Assembly (NCBI RefSeq): GCF_000315625.1
Contig: NW_005434668.1
Coordinates: 4,852 to 68,851 of the forward strand
From: Guillardia theta CCMP2712
Lineage: Eukaryota; Protista; Cryptophyta
DNA length: 64,000 nucleotides
Direction: 5' to 3'
The position numbers and the translations under genes are program-made. Below the pieces are notes generated by a model that was not told the origin of the DNA, did not search any database, and saw only the letters and a list, made by a program, of their open reading frames with translations. Positions 46,233-57,140 of the stretch are shown one piece after another (position 1 is the first letter of the stretch; each line of letters opens with the position of its first letter).

Positions 46233-49200
46233 ATGGAGGGCTTCAATGGCTGGCGCGAGCTAGGTAGCGGAGGGCAGGGGAGGACGATGACAGCGACGGA
46301 GATACTGACAGGGTATGTGAGAGTCATCAAAAGAGTCCCCTGCCCATCCATCCGAGCCGGCAACGATGCGCTGCAGGAAGCAAAGTTCCTTCAGTCCCTC
46401 GACCACCCCCACGTGGTCAAGTACGTGGACGTGTTCTTGCATCAGGAGGGGCAGGAGCTGGAGGTCTGTACAGTAATGGAGTTCTGCGAAGGAGGAGATC
46501 TTGCTCGTAGACTGCAGGACGTCAAGAGTCGCGGTGATTCTTTCACAGAAGAGCAATGTCGCGCCTGGATCTCTCAAGTAGCGATGGGCTTGGAGTATCT
46601 ACACATGGAGAGGATTATTCACAGGGACATCAAACTCCAGAACATCTTGATCACCAAGGAAGAGATACTGAAAATCGCTGACTTTGGCCTTGCGGGAAAG
46701 ATCGACCATGGAATGAGGACCTCCAGGGTGGGCACTCCAGCATACCTTGCTCCAGAGATGTTGCAGCGAGAGGGAACAGGGGAACCGGTCGACATATGGG
46801 GTCTGGGCTGCATCGCGCTTGAGTTGGTGACTCTGTCCTTTCTCACTGACAGAAAAGGCATGCTCGGGGTGGAGGTGCTATCGACCCCGCTGGATGCTGG
46901 AAGACTGCCTCATCGATTCTCCCCCTCCCTCCGCCGCTGCATTGTCTCAATGCTTTGTTTCGATCCTGCTCAGCGACCAACAGCTACCGAGGTCCTTGAA
47001 ATTTGTCAGGTACTAGCCCACTTGCACAGTGCGCTCTGTGCCTTGAGACCTTGGTATGCTGACACTCGCTATGTTTGTCCTCCCAGACTTCCACTCCTCT
47101 TGAGCCCCTCTCAGGTGCCTACAAGGCCAGGCGAGAGCGAGCGATCGCGAAAGTGAGTCGACCTAGACGGTGTTGTCACCGACTCTGACTGTTGGCAGGC
47201 TCGCACTGGAGCTGCGCCCACAGCTGGCAGGGCTGAGATGCCGTCAGAAAGCTCGCATGACGACAGTCAGTCGGAATCCAAAGGCAGCCAGGACGACTGG
47301 TCAGCCTCGATCTTAGGTGAGGATGAGTACGTCTTAGATCACCGTGTTCGAGGCTCAGACTTCCATCAGGACTCGCAGACTCTCTACTGAACAAGGGCCT
47401 GGCCGGACTGATCAACTCCCAATCCTTCAGCGACTCGCACAAGGTGCTGACGCCTTACGGGCTCCGGAGGCGACTCGGGCATGATGCATGCTACAGGGAG
47501 ATGGAGAATCGACCTCGAGATCCAGCAGTCAGACAGATAGAAGAGACGGGGAGAGTTCGGACAGTCAGAGCAACCACCAACGAGCTCGAAGGGATTCCAA
47601 CTCAAACCAGGCTGATCTCGGGCTCGCGCGTGGGAAGTGCGGGGAGTGCGGGCAGACTGTTTGGACTTCACAAAATCGCATGAAGGGCAGGTGAGTGTCA
47701 AATACTCTTGCTCTCACCTGCAAGTGAAGTCGGTTTGAACAAAGTGACGGCACCTACTACCATGAGACTTGCGTCCTCCGAAGGCAGGAGCAAGCTGAAG
47801 CGGCCAAGAGGTGTGTTCTCCTTCACCGACCAGATCCTTACCAAGAGCGTTCAGAGAGCGAGATAGGCCAGATGTGGAAGCACCGTCACCTGACAAGCGA
47901 GCTTGCGACATTGATGATGAGCTGGATCCCGCGATCGTGTGTACCAACACATGCTAGTGGCTGGAAGGTGACTCAAGTGCAGGAGGAGCTCGAGGCGAGG
48001 CATGGAAGAGTCCGCAAGAAAGATGAGAACGGGACTTTTGTGGACGTCAGTTTGCCAGCTCAGCAAAGACCAGCAAGCAGCCTTGAATCTCAGCCCTCCG
48101 CTCCTCCTCTCAATGCAGGTGAAAGCATGGGATGTCCTTGCCGACCCGTTTGATCACACCCTCCTGCCCCGTCAGAAGCAGAAATCCCCTGGGCTCAACC
48201 TCCCGACCCAACAGCTCCTTCCTGGCGTGAGGTGCGCGGAGAAACGGGGGGAGGGAGGCGTGCGAGGGATGACTTGAAGGGATGCAGGACTTTGCGGGAA
48301 TGAATGCGATGATACCCGAGGCATCTGCTGAGATTGAAAGAGCTCAGAGAGGAACCGTTGACCGCACGAAGATCGCAGGTGACACTCGATGTTGTCATGA
48401 CGGAGTTTGACGCCTCATTGGCCAGTCAACGCGTCGCCCAACGGAGTTCACCGACGAGTAGCAAACATCCCCCTCCGAAGGAGCAACAGCAGCGACTCCA
48501 GCGGAAGCTCCGGCCCTCCTTCCCCCAACAATCATGGTGTGGAGTACAGCCTACCGGTACAGCTCTCGGCTCTCGTTGGCACGGCAGTCAACGAGAAGTG
48601 GATCGTTTGCTCCGCATCTCCAGTCAACATACGGACTGAGCCGAGTCTCAAGAGTCAGGTCGTCGGGCAGAAGTACCACGGGGACATGGTCCAGGCTCGC
48701 AAGCGCATCGAGGGGAACGGGGGATGGATCCAGCTGGTGGAGCAAGTGGAGAGGAAGGATGTGTGGATGAGGATCGCGGATGGCCGACGAGTCCTGCTGT
48801 CTCGCGTTCACGGTGAGCTGCAGGCTGAGGGCAAGAGGGGACGATGACAGTGACAGGATTTCCCAGCGGTCCCGGGTGATGAAGCAGCCCCTTCTTCCTT
48901 CAATGCGCGAGGGAGATGGTGGCTGGTCGTGTCTCAAGGGTGTAACGTCCGTGACGAGGTCTAGAGCTCCCGCCGCCTCCCCTCCTCTCTCATGCTCCTG
49001 CAGGCGAACCTCAAGAGCGCTACGATCTCAACTCGCTCCTATGGCGACGTGCTCGAGGCAACAGAGTGCAAGAGCGAGGGAGGTGGATGGGTTCGTATCT
49101 CCCTGCCCGGTATCACGCGCTCCTCCGGCTGGGTGCGGGCCTCGGATAGTGGAAAAGCGATCCTGCGATGCATGGACGGGCAATGGAAAAGCGTGAACGA

Positions 49201-51420: not shown

Positions 51421-52727
51421 CCCAAAGGACAAAGGATTGAACTAGGGTTGAACTGGGATCACACAAGTTGAAAATAGAGAGTAGAATTTGAAATCGAAAT
51501 TGGTTCATTCCCGGTCCCGGGCCCGCGGTCGGGCCGTCCCGCAGTGAGTCCGATCAGCAAAGTTCTATATTGTTTTTGCGAGGCTACTACTGGCTGATTT
51601 GTACCAGCCAGTAGTATCTTGGTATGTCGTAGAATGTACACAATTGTTTTTAGCCCGAGTTGCCCTCTTTTGCATCTGTACTGACCAGATTACTGTGTAA
51701 AAAATCATAAAAAGAAAACTCTAAATCCCCTTAGAGATGTTTCTCCAGATCTGTACCAGAGATACCATATTTCTCTAAAAGTATATAATAAAATACTATA
51801 AAGTTAGTTAATGAAATATAACTTTCACAAATAAAATAGTTTTGAGTGTTTTACAATTATAACTGATACAACTGGTACCCCCACAGCCCCCCTTCTCTCA
51901 CCCGTACACCCAAGTCACCCTTACCACCCCCACCCCACCCTTTTTCCACCCTGACTAGCACCCAATCTATCTACTACCCACCCCATATACAATCCTGACC
52001 CCCTCAAATCCCTACCCAACTACACATCAGTGACTACCCGGTCATGACAGACCATTCTATAGCACTACCCCTTCTCGCTATGCAAACTACCCTTCTACCC
52101 CCATTGTCCACATCAGCTACCACATCCGTCCACCCTCTCGCGCTATGGACCCACCCCTGAATGTGACAACCTCCTATCTACCACTACCCGTGCTATAGGT
52201 TGACTCAGCTCTCACCCGTCCTATTTCCTCAACACACCCTATCTTTACTCATTACCCTACCCTTGTGGTACCTCACACTACCCCACCCCCACCTTCCACC
52301 CGCCACAATCGGCCGCGCCCGTATGCACCATCCTCCTCCTCTCCTCTGCCCGGACAGTGCATCGCCTTCTCCCTATCCCGCCCGCCCCCGCTTCTCCTTA
52401 TCTCCTTCGTGTTCTTGCCAACGTGAACATCCTTTCCCTCATCCCCGAATGCATTCGACCGGGCCTCTTCTTCCCTCGCTCTGCGACTTGTGAGCTGGGT
52501 CTTCCTGTCTCCTCATAGAGCCATGAAGTGGGCGTAAACGTTGAGGATCAATTTTCTGTTTCCATGGCATCACTAGTGGAGAAGCTGATCCTTGCACGTT
52601 GATGCGTGTCATGTCTTTCACTCTTTGTATTGAATGTGTACCTGGGGCAGGTCCAAAAGCTCAAAATTTTCATGTCGATTGCTTTTTCATCTTGCTGAGT
52701 TTTCATGACAGGGGGACCGAAAGTGTT

Positions 52728-55700
52728 ATGGCAACATCTTCTCCTGCACGGGATTTCGATGATAATGACGATGATCCGTTGTACGAGCCGTCAGCGCCTG
52801 ATGCAACTGGCAGTGTGGAGAGCACGGGCGATTCAACTAGTTTGTTTGGACAATTCACTTGGACAGTTGCTCTGCCGGCAGCACCTGCAGACAAGGACTC
52901 ACTAGCTGACATCAGCAAAATAAGACAGTTCAGGTAGTTGGCAGCAGCATCTGTCTTTGTTGTAGATCTGAACATGATGACGCAGTGATGTTTTTGAAGT
53001 GGGAGGATTCGAATGGAAACTGGAAATGTATCCATATGGAGACAGTCAGAGTGACAAAACTTTGTCTGTTTTTCTCTGTGCGGTGGATCGTAAACAGTTG
53101 CCGGGGTGGAGTCAAACTGCACATTATCAGATCACAGTGGTGAGCTGTCATATGGCAGGGGCAACACATGTTTTGTTGCTCATTTGATTGTCTAGGTCAA
53201 CAAGGATCTCCCCAAATCATCTACTCATACAGGATATGACATTTTTAGGGGAAAACGTGATAGTGCATGGGGCTGGAGTAAACTCATAAGCCTCAGCAAG
53301 CTACATGATCAAGCACAGGGCTGGGTGGACGATGGAGGAAATATCACTATCCAAGCAACGGTGCATGTTGTCACGCATGATTATATGCCCGTTAATCGAA
53401 CGTACATTTGCCCTCTCGCTATATTTTCATCTCTGATTATGCTGATGAAGGTATCGCAAGTCCCTCTGTGGATTGTATTACGAAAGAGTTTTGCAAAGCT
53501 ACTTCGAGCCATTCTTGAAGGACGAGCTCTTGCGGTTGGACAAACTTTGTGGGAACAGTGCTTTGCATAAAGGCTTCAGCGATTTTTGGGTTGCTCTGCC
53601 AGATGCCAACAAAAGAGAGCTGTTACAGATCACTTTGGATGAAGTAATTCGCTTGTGATTTGTTCGTTTGCGTTTTGATTTTGTTGGTTTGAAGGTGTTG
53701 CTCAACGTCAAGGCTCGACTGTTTTCTCGCGATCAGCCGGCTACTTACCTAGCAGCTGATGTGATTTTCAAGGCAGCTCAGGATTGTTCTCAGACCAGTG
53801 CAGTAGAAAGTGTGCAACAAACAGTTGTAGGAAACACTTCGTTGTCTATAGTTTGCGGAGGCGAGGGGACAGTGCTGAGGTTGGAGCGTGTTAGTTCTGA
53901 CAAAAATGCGGCTTCCAATTCGTCCACTAAAAGCACAGAGAAAGCAGCAACAATCGAGCCTGTAGACTCGGAGGTAATATGGGACGACCTCATTCGTCTT
54001 AAACTCAGCTTGTTTGTCAGGGCGCATCGAGCAGTTCGAAGTCTAGCTCGAGGGTTTTTCTTCGCACTTGTAGCGGTGTTATCAGAATGAGCAACAGTGC
54101 AAATTTCGTGGACGTATTTCGATCTCAAGTTTCAGATGCATTGGATAATGTAACATACACTTACCCATGAGATCACAACGGTACTAAAGTTGATAATTTG
54201 CAGGTGAAGGCTTTGGTGAAACACCTGAAACCGCAGAGTTGCGATGGAACTTGTTTAGAGGCAATGGGTCGGCAGATGCTTGCAGTTTTCGCCATGTGTG
54301 GAATGTACATAACAAATGTGCACCCATCTTATCACGAAAAACTTGCTCTACAACTGCAAGAAGACTTGATACGGGAGGAAGAAGAAAAGAATCTGAAAGC
54401 TCAAGCGAAAAAAGCCAAGCAGGCTGAGAAGAAGAAAAAGCAGCAAGGTAAATCTTTGATTTAAAGTGCTGAGAATATCACTTATTGCTTTGACACCAAT
54501 TTTTCTGCAGAGCTCAAAGCACAGAAACGAGCTGAGGAGGAGGCAGCGAAGAAGAAAGCAGAAGAAGAAGAAAAGAAGAAGAAGGAAGAGGAGAAAGAAG
54601 AACGTCGCAAGAAGGAGGAGGAAGCTGCTCGTAAAAAAGCGGAAGCAAAGAGACTGGCGCAGGAAGAGGCTGAGCGCAAGAGAAGGTTGGAACTTGAGGC
54701 TGAGGAGAAGCGAAAGAGGGAAGAAGCTGAACGGAAGCGAGAAGAAGCTGAGAAGAAGAAAGAGGCTGCCGAAAAGAAACGAGAGGCTGCCGAAAAGAAG
54801 AGGGAAGCCGAGGAAAAGAAAAGGGAGGCCGAGGAGAAAAAACAGCGAGAAGAAGCTGAGAGGAGGGCTAGAGAACAGGAGGCTGCGGCACGCCAGGCTG
54901 CGATTGAGCAAGAGAAGGAGAAGGCGAAGGAGAAGGAGGATGAAGTGCCATATGAAGAACAGTTGAAACGGAAAGAGATTGCTGCAATCATGCGGAATAC
55001 CTCTCTTTCTCCGCAAGAAAAGCAAGCAAGAGTTCAAGCCATTTTGGCAGGCAAGGTGGATGTGACTAAGAGTGCTGCTATGCACGTGAGCAGTTCGCAA
55101 GAAGACGCACCAGAAGAGGCGACGGCATCCGAAAAGAGTGCCGCAGCTCGGACAGAAAGGGTTTCTCAAAGAGCTCAAGTCGAGCCAGCTCCCTTTTCTG
55201 TTAGTTCGAGAGCAGATTTCGCTCCGCCGATCCCCTTTAATCCCTTGGCGATGGACTCCTCGGCTGACATAGATGTCGAGGCGGTTGCTTTGCAGGCATT
55301 GGAAGGTTTTGGAGGAGATGACATTATGTCTATTGCGTTGGGGAATATGGGCGCTCCTGCGAATACATGGAACTTTGGTGGGCAACAAGAGTATGTGCCA
55401 GAAAACAGCAAGAGTTTTCAGGTCCCATTCACTCAAAATCATGCTAATTCACAAGGCGCTGCTGGTTCAAGGCTGTTCGAGAAATGGAGTGGCAAGGGGC
55501 ACTCATCGCAGGACAATTCTGTACATAGCAATCATTGTAACGGAAATATGATGTTTCATAACAATGGTTTCGATTCTGAGGAGAACGAGGCAAGCATTGC
55601 TTCAACAGCTTCAGGTACGCGCACCCCGCTTTCTTTCGATGTCGATTTTGCAGAACCCGGCTCACCTGAAATTTCAAAAATAGATGGGAACTACATGTCA

Positions 55701-56885
55701 CATGTTTCGGGAGACTGGGGCGTGGATTCATCTCAGCCCAGCAAGAGACGACAGATATGCCTTTTGCTTGCTTACATTGGGAATGACTTTCAGGGTGGCC
55801 TCACACACCAGAATCCTTCCGTTCGGACTGTTGAAGGTGAACTTTTGAAGGTACTGCGCGCGTCAGGTGCCTTGAATCCGGATCCGTCAATGTCGTCGTT
55901 GGAGAAGATCGGATGGACGCATGCCTGCCTCACTGAACCAGGAGTGCATGCCTCGGGTCAATGCGTGACGGTGGATATTGTGAAGCCTCGGGAAAGTCTA
56001 GCAACTTTCATTGAGCGCTTGAATGCAAGGCTTTCTGGGGACTTGAGGATTCTGAATTGCACCGTGTTTGGCAATTCAAATTATAACAATTTTGGACCTT
56101 CAGCCGCCAAGGGTAGTGGTTCAAAATTCGATGCCGGTAATCATGCCCTCTGCTCGTTTGAGTACGTTATTCCATCAGCATTGTTCTGCGTATTCCCGTC
56201 AAGAATTCTGAACTCAGGAGGTGCTGCTATCTATGAATACTTGCGTCAGTTCAGGATGTCGTCAGTTCGTGAGCAACAGCTGAACTACATTCTACGACAG
56301 TTTCAAACTGGTGGTGTGCGTGGATTGCCATGGTTCCAGGAACAGTGGGATTTCTCTCTGTTCACTGACAAAGCCTTTGCTAATCTGGCACTTGGATCAA
56401 TCAAGTCGTTCAGCATATCGGAGAAGTTGGTGGTTCACGGCATCGAACACCTGGTTCTGCGTGTGGAAGGGGTGAATTTCTTTCCTGGACAAATCATGAA
56501 GATGGTTGGTTTGTCAGTCTTGACCTTGTGTCGCAAGCCAGAATCAACGGATTTGTCTTCGCTCCTGCAAGAGGCGGTGAGCATGCTTTCATTTCTCTTG
56601 ACCTCCCCTACTTCGTGAAACAGTTACTCTAATTTGTGGAACTGACCTTGCTTGCAGACTCTGATACGTAAAGTATTGCGCCATGAATATGAGATTACGA
56701 TTCCCTCACCACCAAGTCATGGACTTATTCTGGATAAGGTGCTCTACGGTTCTGACGAGCACATCGTGAACGGGCAGGCGCACAAAGCCATTGAGCTTTA
56801 CAAGAGGGGAACGATCTATCAGTCAGTGTGCTCCTCTGCGATGGTTCACCGTTTTGTCGAGTGGTTTATTGGGGGCTCCATGTAA
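52728..56885 (+). CDS. TRAF1/MUSE13-14-like MATH-domain protein with charged coiled coil and C-terminal PUS1/TruA-like domain
   Basis: MATH: FTWTV, FEVGGFEWKLEMYPYG, LSVFLC, WGWSKLISL. MGRQMLAVF...EKLALQLQEDLIREEE resembles plant TRAF1a/b. PUS1-like: RQICLLLAYIGNDFQG, RTVEGEL, TEPGVHASGQ, GQIMKMVG, IPSPPSHGLIL. The coil and PUS domain share one 643-aa ORF. Confidence 0.85.
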
Positions 56886-57140
56886 GATGCAAGTCCACTA
56901 AGTTGCTGCAATTCCAGACATATCCCTTACCAATAAACCGCTTGCTCCCTTATCCTCCGTCTCTGAGGCACGCCGCCGGTGATCGGCGGGCCTGTACCGT
57001 CTGAGAGTCTGCTGGGGCGGCCACTGGGCCAGTTGGATTCCGGGACTCTGCACCCGGCGGGCTGAAGTGCCCGCCGCCGGGCGCTGGCCGGGGCTTCAAG
57101 TGTCCGAGTCAATGCGTCTCGGAACTGTGAACTCGTTTTC

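Follow-up and report, generated by a model that had tools for sequence, protein, structure and literature searches.

The gene lies at positions 52728–56885 on the forward strand of the window, that is, the whole 64,000-nucleotide stretch of Guillardia theta CCMP2712 DNA that was analysed. It is a single gene of nine exons with an ATG at 52728 and a stop codon at 56883–56885. Single spliced contigs of 3,761, 3,734 and 3,522 nt from three independent studies (X1, X2 and X7, respectively) span 52710–56951 and cover both the MATH and the PUS part, which confirms that the two are on one transcript, and they define eight constitutive introns, all GT-AG. Raw RNA reads (X22) with A-tails after 56952 mark the poly(A) site; these reads number 27 over the gene and are too thin for judging internal transcript starts. 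The original prediction had the start and stop codons right but overlooked exon 6 (54021–54149), and the gene model is corrected here by one added exon and one alternative intron. The features are as follows.

52710–56952 (+), mRNA, beginning where the longest RNA contigs begin and ending at the poly(A) addition site
52728–52933 (+), exon 1, start codon ATG, acidic N-terminal stretch and first part of the MATH domain; RNA junction skipping 52 nt, GT..AG
52986–53139 (+), exon 2, core of the MATH domain (Pfam MATH_2 E=7e-8 with this exon alone; RNA junctions)
53196–53401 (+), exon 3, end of the MATH domain, the whole domain being at about 52848–53363 (MATH_2 at residues 66–176 of the orthologue; RNA junctions)
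53451–53643 (+), exon 4, TRAF1a-like helical region after the MATH domain (alignment with plant protein P0008; RNA junctions)
53695–53973 (+), exon 5, TRAF1a-like region and a Ser-rich loop (plant alignment; RNA junctions)
54021–54149 (+), exon 6, 43 aa 'GASSSS...RMSNSANFVDVFRSQVSDALDN' (junctions 53971>54019 and 54149>54204 in X1, X2 and X7)
54204–54447 (+), exon 7, helix 'MGRQMLAVF...QEDLIREEEE', common to plant TRAF1a/b-type proteins, and start of the ER/K helix
54360–54938 (+), with the intron 54448–54510 inside, putative ER/K-type charged helix, aa 442–613 (172 aa), from composition only
54511–56576 (+), exon 8, open frame of 2,066 nt with the remaining ER/K helix, the disordered linker and most of the pseudo-PUS1 domain
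54939–55739 (+), disordered linker with conserved motifs, within exon 8
55615–55683 (+), alternative in-frame intron of 69 nt that excises 'GTRTPLSFDVDFAEPGSPEISKI' (junction in X2 and X7, not in X1)
55740–56576 (+), first 279 aa of the pseudo-PUS1 (TruA-fold) domain (phmmer, HMMER, AlphaFold, Foldseek)
55935–55937 (+), GAA codon of Glu946, which aligns with the catalytic Asp; Leu likewise replaces the Arg of RTD (alignment; DNA and RNA agree)
56658–56885 (+), exon 9, C-terminal end of the PUS domain with a strand and helices ('ITIPSPPSHGLILDKV'), and stop codon (junction skipping 81 nt; alignment with P0014 and P0015 at their C-terminal ends)

Exon 6 is found in other cryptophyte orthologues, yet it is missing from the Hanusia transcript model, and the motif removed by the alternative intron is kept across cryptophyte orthologues. 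The uninterrupted exon 8 encodes the charged region and most of the PUS domain, and exon 9 adds its final 75 aa (76 codons, counting the stop); the PUS1-like domain is thus part of one coding sequence with MATH, as had been proposed. The domain order is identical in P0001 (1,159 aa), a protein from the transcriptome of Hanusia phi. The locus is one expressed gene, and its product is a cytosolic-type protein of 1,234 aa.

The MATH domain in exons 1–3 is detected with higher significance in the Hanusia orthologue (MATH_2 E=2e-20, MATH E=2e-13), and there is a single N-terminal MATH/TRAF-C domain, as in adaptors of the TRAF1a/b (MUSE13/14) type. The original prediction of a TRAF1/MUSE-like protein with a MATH domain and a segment 'MGRQMLAVF...EKLALQLQEDLIREEE', located in exon 7, is borne out by homology that reaches beyond the MATH domain. 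In BLASTP with residues 1–470 of the Hanusia protein, residues 2–420 align with residues 46–437 of the plant protein P0008 at 25% identity (E=6e-32), streptophyte matches extend over some 90% of the N-terminal 425 aa, and an Atlas cluster named 'At5g43560-like' was matched at a score of 0.83, which is a lead only; At5g43560 is TRAF1a/MUSE14 (PMC11605875, PMC12238093). The homology past the MATH domain covers a helical region of about 250 aa up to the 'QEDLIREEE' helix; in the TRAF1a/b relatives this region is closed by '...LKRQEELIREE', and the counterpart in the window is 'LQLQEDLIREEE'. Arabidopsis TRAF1a and TRAF1b (MUSE14 and MUSE13; At5g43560 and At1g04300) and their streptophyte relatives also share with the window protein the single N-terminal position of the MATH domain, a long C-terminal half of charged or disordered sequence and an overall length of about 1,050–1,340 aa, but MATH is the sole Pfam domain of the plant proteins P0006, P0008 and P0012, and none of them has a PUS domain. 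The Arabidopsis proteins connect NLRs and ATG6, as substrates, to ubiquitin ligases of the SCF or SINAT type, and binding to these ligases and to ATG6 is established for the plant TRAF1a/b proteins only (PMC11605875, PMC12238093). That the analogy with them rests on 25% identity counts against the functional proposal made below.

A long charged coil had been predicted between the two domains. The charged region does sit ahead of the PUS domain, but the assignment as a coiled coil was dropped, and the composition of the 172-aa stretch, 94% E/K/R/Q/A and 4.7% hydrophobic residues with 35 E(i)–K/R(i+4) pairs and no heptad pattern, fits better with an ER/K single alpha-helix. The linker that follows is disordered, about 270 aa long, and carries short motifs kept among cryptophytes, namely 'SRLFERW', 'DSE..ASTASGTRTP' and 'GSPE', which are found upstream of the PUS domain in P0013, L002/P0016, L005/P0164 and L003/P0014.

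Pfam (PF01416) gives no match in the PUS region of the window, even at E<=10, and the homology is therefore shown by phmmer against the PDB, by a search of representative proteins and by the fold; in the relatives P0013 and P0014 the PUS domain is above the Pfam gathering score. With phmmer, human PUS1 is matched at E=3e-11 with LTE aligned over RTD, and the HMMER search of a representative library of 1.8 billion proteins gave 565 matches at E<=1e-3, of which all those inspected were PUS1-like. The AlphaFold model has a pLDDT of 87.5, and its top Foldseek match is human PUS1 (E=6.5e-17), with yeast PUS1, TruA and PUS3 among the other top matches. The homology of the C-terminal domain to PUS1 is far above chance. 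The domain resembles eukaryotic PUS1 of the TruA family (human 4j37 and 4nz6, yeast Pus1 7r9f and 7r9g) in fold (TM 0.63–0.68, Foldseek E about 1e-16), in recognisable sequence motifs and in charge, the net charge being +5 with a pI of 8.7, as compared to a mean of +5 and 8.4 in active PUS1 domains. It differs by a clade-specific insertion 'TGG[VT][RK]GxPW' in the cryptophyte domain, and by being the C-terminal part of a 1,234-aa adaptor, whereas eukaryotic PUS1 is a stand-alone enzyme of 400–550 aa.

The motifs read HACLTEPGVHA at 55920–55952, with Glu in place of the catalytic Asp as first noticed, and WDFSLFT (56346–56366) and GQIMKM (56487–56504) in place of the HNF and HQIRKM motifs, also as predicted. 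In columns that are 95–100% conserved among 85 PUS1-type sequences, the replacements are R61H, R64L (the Arg of RTD), D66E, Y140F (the active-site Tyr of RxYxY), N207L (the Asn of HNF), R219G and R253M (the Arg of HQIRKM), and the catalytic Asp is present in 100% of the 85. The DNA and three RNA assemblies agree without differences at the Glu codon and the Hanusia phi motif is identical; a sequencing error is thereby ruled out. Conservation of the Asp-to-Glu change in other cryptophytes had been suggested as a check; the change is present in Hanusia phi, and in the other lineages the motif is APTEEGVHA, S[S/R]FEGEHA or LPLDNPASA (P0013, L002/P0016, L005/P0164 and L003/P0014), and the last of these, from P0014, has an Asp at the aligned position. 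PUS1 with D134A is inactive and retains RNA binding, the Asp being strictly required (PMC10631681), and replacement of the flipping Arg abolishes activity, while Tyr to Phe keeps about 3% (PMC3919597). Five near-invariant Arg in or near the RNA cleft are gone from the window protein, two of them equivalent to yeast R132 and, by motif mapping, R362, which contact RNA (PMC10631681), and canonical docking of a flipped-out uridine is therefore unlikely. The domain is a member of the TruA/PUS1 fold family, but it is not predicted to be an active enzyme.

The linker and a degenerate PUS domain are joined in at least three other cryptophyte-like lineages, and the idea that the fusion is specific to Guillardia and Hanusia was dropped as P0013, L002, L003 and L005 show both parts. 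The junction is kept in four lineages and is in frame in all except L003, where the frame changes at a GC-rich tract between the linker and the PUS domain, probably through an assembly indel. In a quick IQ-TREE analysis the degenerate PUS domains group as one clade (SH-aLRT 99); its sister is the active, RTD-bearing P0017, and the window/Hanusia lineage is on a long branch. The dN/dS between L002 and L005 is 0.08 in the PUS domain and 0.21 in the linker, at a dS of 0.74, and the window and Hanusia proteins are 92.8% identical in the PUS domain and 85.3% in the linker; the PUS domain is under strong purifying selection where this can be measured. The most conserved parts within the pseudo-clade are 'FQTGGTKGxPW', 'WDFSLFT' and the helices between 'EYVIPSA' and WDFSLFT, all in a part of the sequence that varies among active PUS1 enzymes. 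These residues could form a new protein-binding surface instead of an RNA-binding one, which would speak against the proposal below. The domain is missing in at least two related lineages, L001 and L006, and that these manage without it also weighs against that proposal. A word-indexed protein search with the PUS region of the window gave the Hanusia orthologue as the sole match, and a search with a profile of the pseudo-clade yielded P0164 as its one addition; neither brought up the protein of the window organism itself. A metagenome scan gave one locus, L005. In the representative-library and profile searches there was no pseudo-clade member that stands alone.

The combination of a TRAF-type MATH domain and a dead PUS1 is undescribed so far. 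The original prediction did not recognise this architecture, in line with the absence of any MATH and PUS combination in the literature that turned up, and with nine of the longest (719–1,115 aa) among the 150 best PUS1 relatives, in which Pfam found neither MATH nor other partner domains. Few pseudoenzymes are known to descend from RNA-modifying enzymes, and these are stand-alone RNA scaffolds. Non-catalytic PUS-fold proteins bound to RNA are known among the mitoribosome assembly factors of Trypanosoma brucei, namely the PUS-like chains FB/FC of 6sga, which are among the Foldseek matches, and mt-LAF3 (preprint 10.1101/2023.02.23.529727). The window protein is like these factors and the mammalian RPUSD3-type paralogues in that the PUS fold is kept for a role free of catalysis; those proteins, however, bind mitochondrial rRNA as stand-alone factors, some belong to the RluA family, and none carries a fused MATH or TRAF-type adaptor.

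The architecture and the loss of catalysis are regarded as highly probable. As for function, we favour RNA binding coupled to ubiquitination, as in the original prediction, or to autophagy, to which we would give a probability of about 0.4. The PUS1 domain would be a pseudoenzyme kept as a binding module, with a structured RNA or a ribonucleoprotein as its most likely ligand; RNA or RNP recognition is favoured because the PUS1 fold and basic surface charge are kept and a catalytically dead PUS1 still binds RNA. The cargo would be presented to the MATH end across a long rigid spacer, and the MATH end may, by analogy with plant TRAF1a/b, recruit autophagy factors and ubiquitin ligases of the RING or SCF type. 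The fuller picture is put forward tentatively: a new kind of adaptor in which the dead PUS1 reads structured RNAs (tRNA-like or viral) or RNPs, the ER/K helix holds it about 25 nm from the MATH domain, the cargo is passed to ubiquitin-ligase or autophagy pathways, and the alternatively spliced linker with its phospho-motif (GTRTP...GSPE) tunes the process.

A somewhat less probable alternative is that the dead PUS1 is a module for protein-protein interaction or regulation with no RNA ligand, which docks a substrate or ligase or folds back on the MATH domain. The loss of many Arg in the RNA cleft, differing by lineage, is consistent with this, as are the strongly conserved clade-specific insertion and helices that arose where active PUS1 varies, and the strong purifying selection despite a degenerate active site. 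On the other hand, the overall basic charge of active PUS1 and the complete fold are kept, and every non-catalytic PUS-fold protein that was found acts on RNA.

In either case a dead PUS1 is conserved at the C-terminus of a TRAF/MATH adaptor whose plant relatives control the turnover of immune receptors and autophagy factors, and a testable family is gained. If the domain still reads RNA, as we favour, the protein would physically and directly connect RNA or RNP recognition with ubiquitin and autophagy signalling, and it would be a natural experiment in the repurposing of the PUS fold after catalysis was lost, since the degenerate active sites of the four lineages all differ. Should the domain bind protein instead, it would be a clean case of a new function on the fold of an RNA enzyme. 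The general impact is tempered by the restriction to a little-studied algal group.

It is improbable that the fusion exists at the mRNA level only, with the PUS part also or mainly made alone, by an internal start or by cleavage of the linker, and acting independently of MATH. An in-frame Met ('MSHVSGDW', 55695) lies 15 codons ahead of the PUS domain, the linker is long and disordered, and minor transcripts would be invisible in contigs and in so few raw reads, but the whole gene is one contig in all three RNA assemblies, the junction with the linker is conserved as described above, and the searches gave no pseudo-clade member standing alone. It is very unlikely that the domain still modifies RNA, as a pseudouridine synthase or otherwise, with Glu as the catalytic carboxylate. 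A carboxylate is retained by the Glu, and P0014 has its Asp, but three further residues are gone too (the flipping Arg, the Tyr and the Arg of HQIRKM), and the D60E variant of TruA is reportedly inactive (Huang et al. 1998). A sister lineage has Phe at the Asp position with a dN/dS of 0.08, and the carboxylate is therefore not under selection. The Asp is moreover invariant in 85 of 85 PUS1-type relatives, and none of the families tested can do without it (PMC10631681, PMC3919597). A functionless, decaying passenger of an accidental read-through fusion, which the degenerate active site, the related lineages with no such domain and the long window/Hanusia branch might suggest, is largely refuted by the frame being intact in most lineages, the low dN/dS between L002 and L005, the higher window–Hanusia identity in the PUS domain than in the linker, the confidently predicted fold, and the conserved motifs that have arisen across the clade.

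The gene occupies 52728-56885 on the plus strand; it is eukaryotic, and its GT-AG introns are short. An initial model was made from an open-frame map, with junctions placed by means of P0001, a Hanusia phi transcriptome protein of 1,159 aa and the one close relative in the databases (93% identity in the PUS region), and the final model from public RNA assemblies aligned to window positions 52500-57100. In each of three runs, which come from three studies, there is a single spliced contig (3,761, 3,734 and 3,522 nt), extending from 52710 or 52829 to 56872-56951 without a letter differing from the DNA, and A-tails follow 56952 in raw RNA reads. The junctions of these contigs settle the structure: nine exons and a protein of 1,234 aa.

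Exon junctions in the spliced RNA contigs
52933/52986, plus strand, exon junction
53139/53196, plus strand, exon junction
53401/53451, plus strand, exon junction
53643/53695, plus strand, exon junction
53973/54021, plus strand, exon junction
54149/54204, plus strand, exon junction
54447/54511, plus strand, exon junction
56576/56658, plus strand, exon junction

The originally predicted gene span stands, but the 129-nt exon 54021-54149, encoding 'GASSSS...RMSNSANFVDVFRSQVSDALDN', had been overlooked; it is included in all three Guillardia theta assemblies, and a homologous segment is present in Chroomonas and metagenomic orthologues and skipped in P0001. One uninterrupted 2,066-nt exon holds the charged stretch together with most of the PUS domain, and the RNA contigs are single, which rules out separate MATH and PUS transcripts as the main product. 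That the PUS part is made separately is unlikely. Within exon 8, two of the three assemblies also splice out a GT-AG intron of 69 nt that keeps the frame (55615-55683), and this deletes 'GTRTPLSFDVDFAEPGSPEISKI' ('GTRTP...GSPE') just upstream of the PUS domain, a motif that is kept across the cryptophyte relatives and may contain proline-directed phosphorylation sites. P0001 departs from the window sequence after 'LLQEA' (residues 1120-1159 against 56577-56657) and stops early, which suggests that the transcript assembly kept the final intron and that the PUS domain of the database entry is therefore cut short. An RNA contig of assembly run X7 has an 'opposite strands' joint at the gene's 5' end (52712/52825), most probably an artefact in the form of a hairpin chimera that arose in assembly. 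Directly upstream is a C-rich tract (52000-52500; GC 0.56, GC skew -0.54) that may be promoter or neighbour-UTR sequence, and about 5.5 kb upstream an ORF encoding a complete protein kinase domain (46233-47156, plus strand; Pkinase E=2.5e-58) with no evident link to the gene.

MATH is found by Pfam with E=7e-8 in exon 2 alone and 2e-20 in the Hanusia orthologue. A plant MATH protein of 1,168 aa aligns with residues 2-420 (E=6e-32, 25% identity) over MATH, the helical region after it and the 'RQEELIREE' helix; streptophyte matches extend over some 90% of residues 1-425, and a feature search names the cluster 'At5g43560-like' for this half. At5g43560 is TRAF1a/MUSE14, which with MUSE13 (At1g04300) acts in Arabidopsis as an adaptor through which SINAT or SCF ligases receive ATG6 and NLR receptors (PMC11605875, PMC12238093). 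This role is known from plants alone and is applied here by analogy. No domain besides MATH was found in the plant relatives examined, whereas the cryptophyte protein adds a PUS domain. The 172 aa after the 'RQEELIREE'-type helix are 94% E/K/R/Q/A and 4.7% hydrophobic with no heptad seam, a composition that disfavours a coiled coil and is read as a putative ER/K single alpha-helix, a rigid spacer.

The PUS domain was not detected in a Pfam search of the window protein, while phmmer matched human PUS1 at E=3e-11 with LTE placed over RTD, and an exhaustive HMMER search with the region gave 565 matches, all inspected ones being PUS1-like. Its AlphaFold model (pLDDT 87.5) retrieved human PUS1, yeast Pus1, TruA and PUS3 in Foldseek (E from 6.5e-17, TM 0.63-0.68). 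Together with Pfam for MATH and the RNA, these searches bear out the original prediction of both domains in one gene, in which the positions of HACLTEPGVHA, the Glu codon (GAA, 55935-55937), WDFSLFT and GQIMKM were all exact. The parts are known, namely plant-type TRAF1 MATH adaptors, PUS1 and non-catalytic PUS paralogues, and no such combination is known; full-text literature searches pairing MATH with pseudouridine synthase gave no match, and none of nine of the longest among the 150 best PUS1 relatives carries MATH or another Pfam domain.

Substitutions in the PUS domain of the window protein, from alignment with 85 RTD-keeping PUS1-type sequences (columns conserved in at least 85% of these)
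R61, conserved: H
R64, Arg of RTD: L
D66, catalytic Asp: E
Arg of RxYxY: missing
Y140: F
G201: E
N207: L
R219: G
R253, Arg of HQIRKM: M

The catalytic Asp is strictly required, yeast PUS1 D134A being inactive yet RNA-binding (PMC10631681); without the flipping Arg there is no activity, and about 3% remains after Tyr to Phe (PMC3919597). By its sequence the domain is very probably catalytically dead, and residual catalysis is unlikely. A sequencing error at the Glu codon is excluded, since the DNA and three RNA assemblies agree and the Hanusia motif is identical.

The proteins that the exhaustive search ranked highest (about 40% identity, E down to 8e-53) differ from ordinary PUS1 proteins. P0013, from an NCBI assembly, starts with the linker motifs 'EEDVDVEAFAL', 'GSRLFERW', 'SDSE..ASTASGTRTP' and 'GSPE', passes directly into the PUS domain and reads 'AAPTEEGVHA' at the catalytic motif. 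The linker is likewise continuous with the PUS domain in contigs from Logan (L002/P0016) and from a JGI metagenome (L005/P0164), both with 'S[S/R]FEGEHA' and Phe at the catalytic position. The linker also occurs in a JGI transcript contig (L003/P0014), whose PUS domain reads 'LPLDNPASA'; at L003:140-230 the frame changes from 1 (linker) to 2 (PUS) across a GC-rich, GGCGGCGG-rich tract, probably by an assembly indel, which is favoured over a real frameshift. P0013-P0016, L002, L003 and L005 are called cryptophyte-like because they have the family-specific linker common to Hanusia phi and Chroomonas. A quick tree search with 91 domains places all six pseudo-PUS rows in a single clade (SH-aLRT 99) with a long stem and the RTD-keeping P0017 as sister; the dead domain belongs to a conserved family and is not a one-off. 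Between L002 and L005, dN/dS is 0.08 for the PUS domain (at dS 0.74) and 0.21 for the linker, and the window protein is about 95% identical to that of Hanusia phi.

Identity by region, window against Hanusia
MATH: 99.3%
PUS: 92.8%
Charged helix: 92.6%
Linker: 85.3%

Because of the dN/dS in the L002/L005 pair and these regional identities, the dead domain is judged to be maintained by selection, and a decaying passenger is unlikely.

From the established architecture, expression, loss of catalytic residues and selection we tentatively infer a function (probability about 0.4), in which the non-catalytic PUS1-fold domain would bind RNA or an RNP, the rigid spacer would tether it to the TRAF1-type adaptor, and the adaptor would feed the bound cargo to the ubiquitin-ligase or autophagy machinery. 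Consistent with RNA binding, the fold is intact, net charge (+5) and pI (8.7) match those usual in active PUS1 domains, catalytically inactive PUS1 still binds RNA (PMC10631681), and PUS-fold RNA scaffolds are known among T. brucei assembly factors, which are fold matches, mt-LAF3 being described in a preprint (10.1101/2023.02.23.529727). However, RNA-contacting arginines equivalent to yeast R132 and, by motif mapping, R362 are lost (PMC10631681), as are three more near-invariant Arg residues; mutants of such RNA-contacting arginines still bound RNA (PMC10631681). Clade-specific conserved motifs ('FQTGGTKGxPW' and neighbouring helices) also sit where active PUS1 proteins vary, which fits a new protein-binding surface equally well, a somewhat less probable role.

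Some relatives have no PUS domain. On a 15-kb Tara scaffold (L001/P0004) the gene ends about 40 aa past 'GSPE', followed by a cyclin gene on the opposite strand, with no PUS similarity in the next 8 kb. The Chroomonas CCMP1168 protein (P0002) and that of a related genomic contig (L006/P0005) end soon past 'SRLFERW', with no PUS-like sequence in 1.7 kb downstream. These may be losses, the ancestral state or paralogues. On the Tara scaffold the MATH gene is adjoined by a gene for a bacteriorhodopsin-family protein (L001:1272-2024, minus strand; Pfam Bac_rhodopsin).
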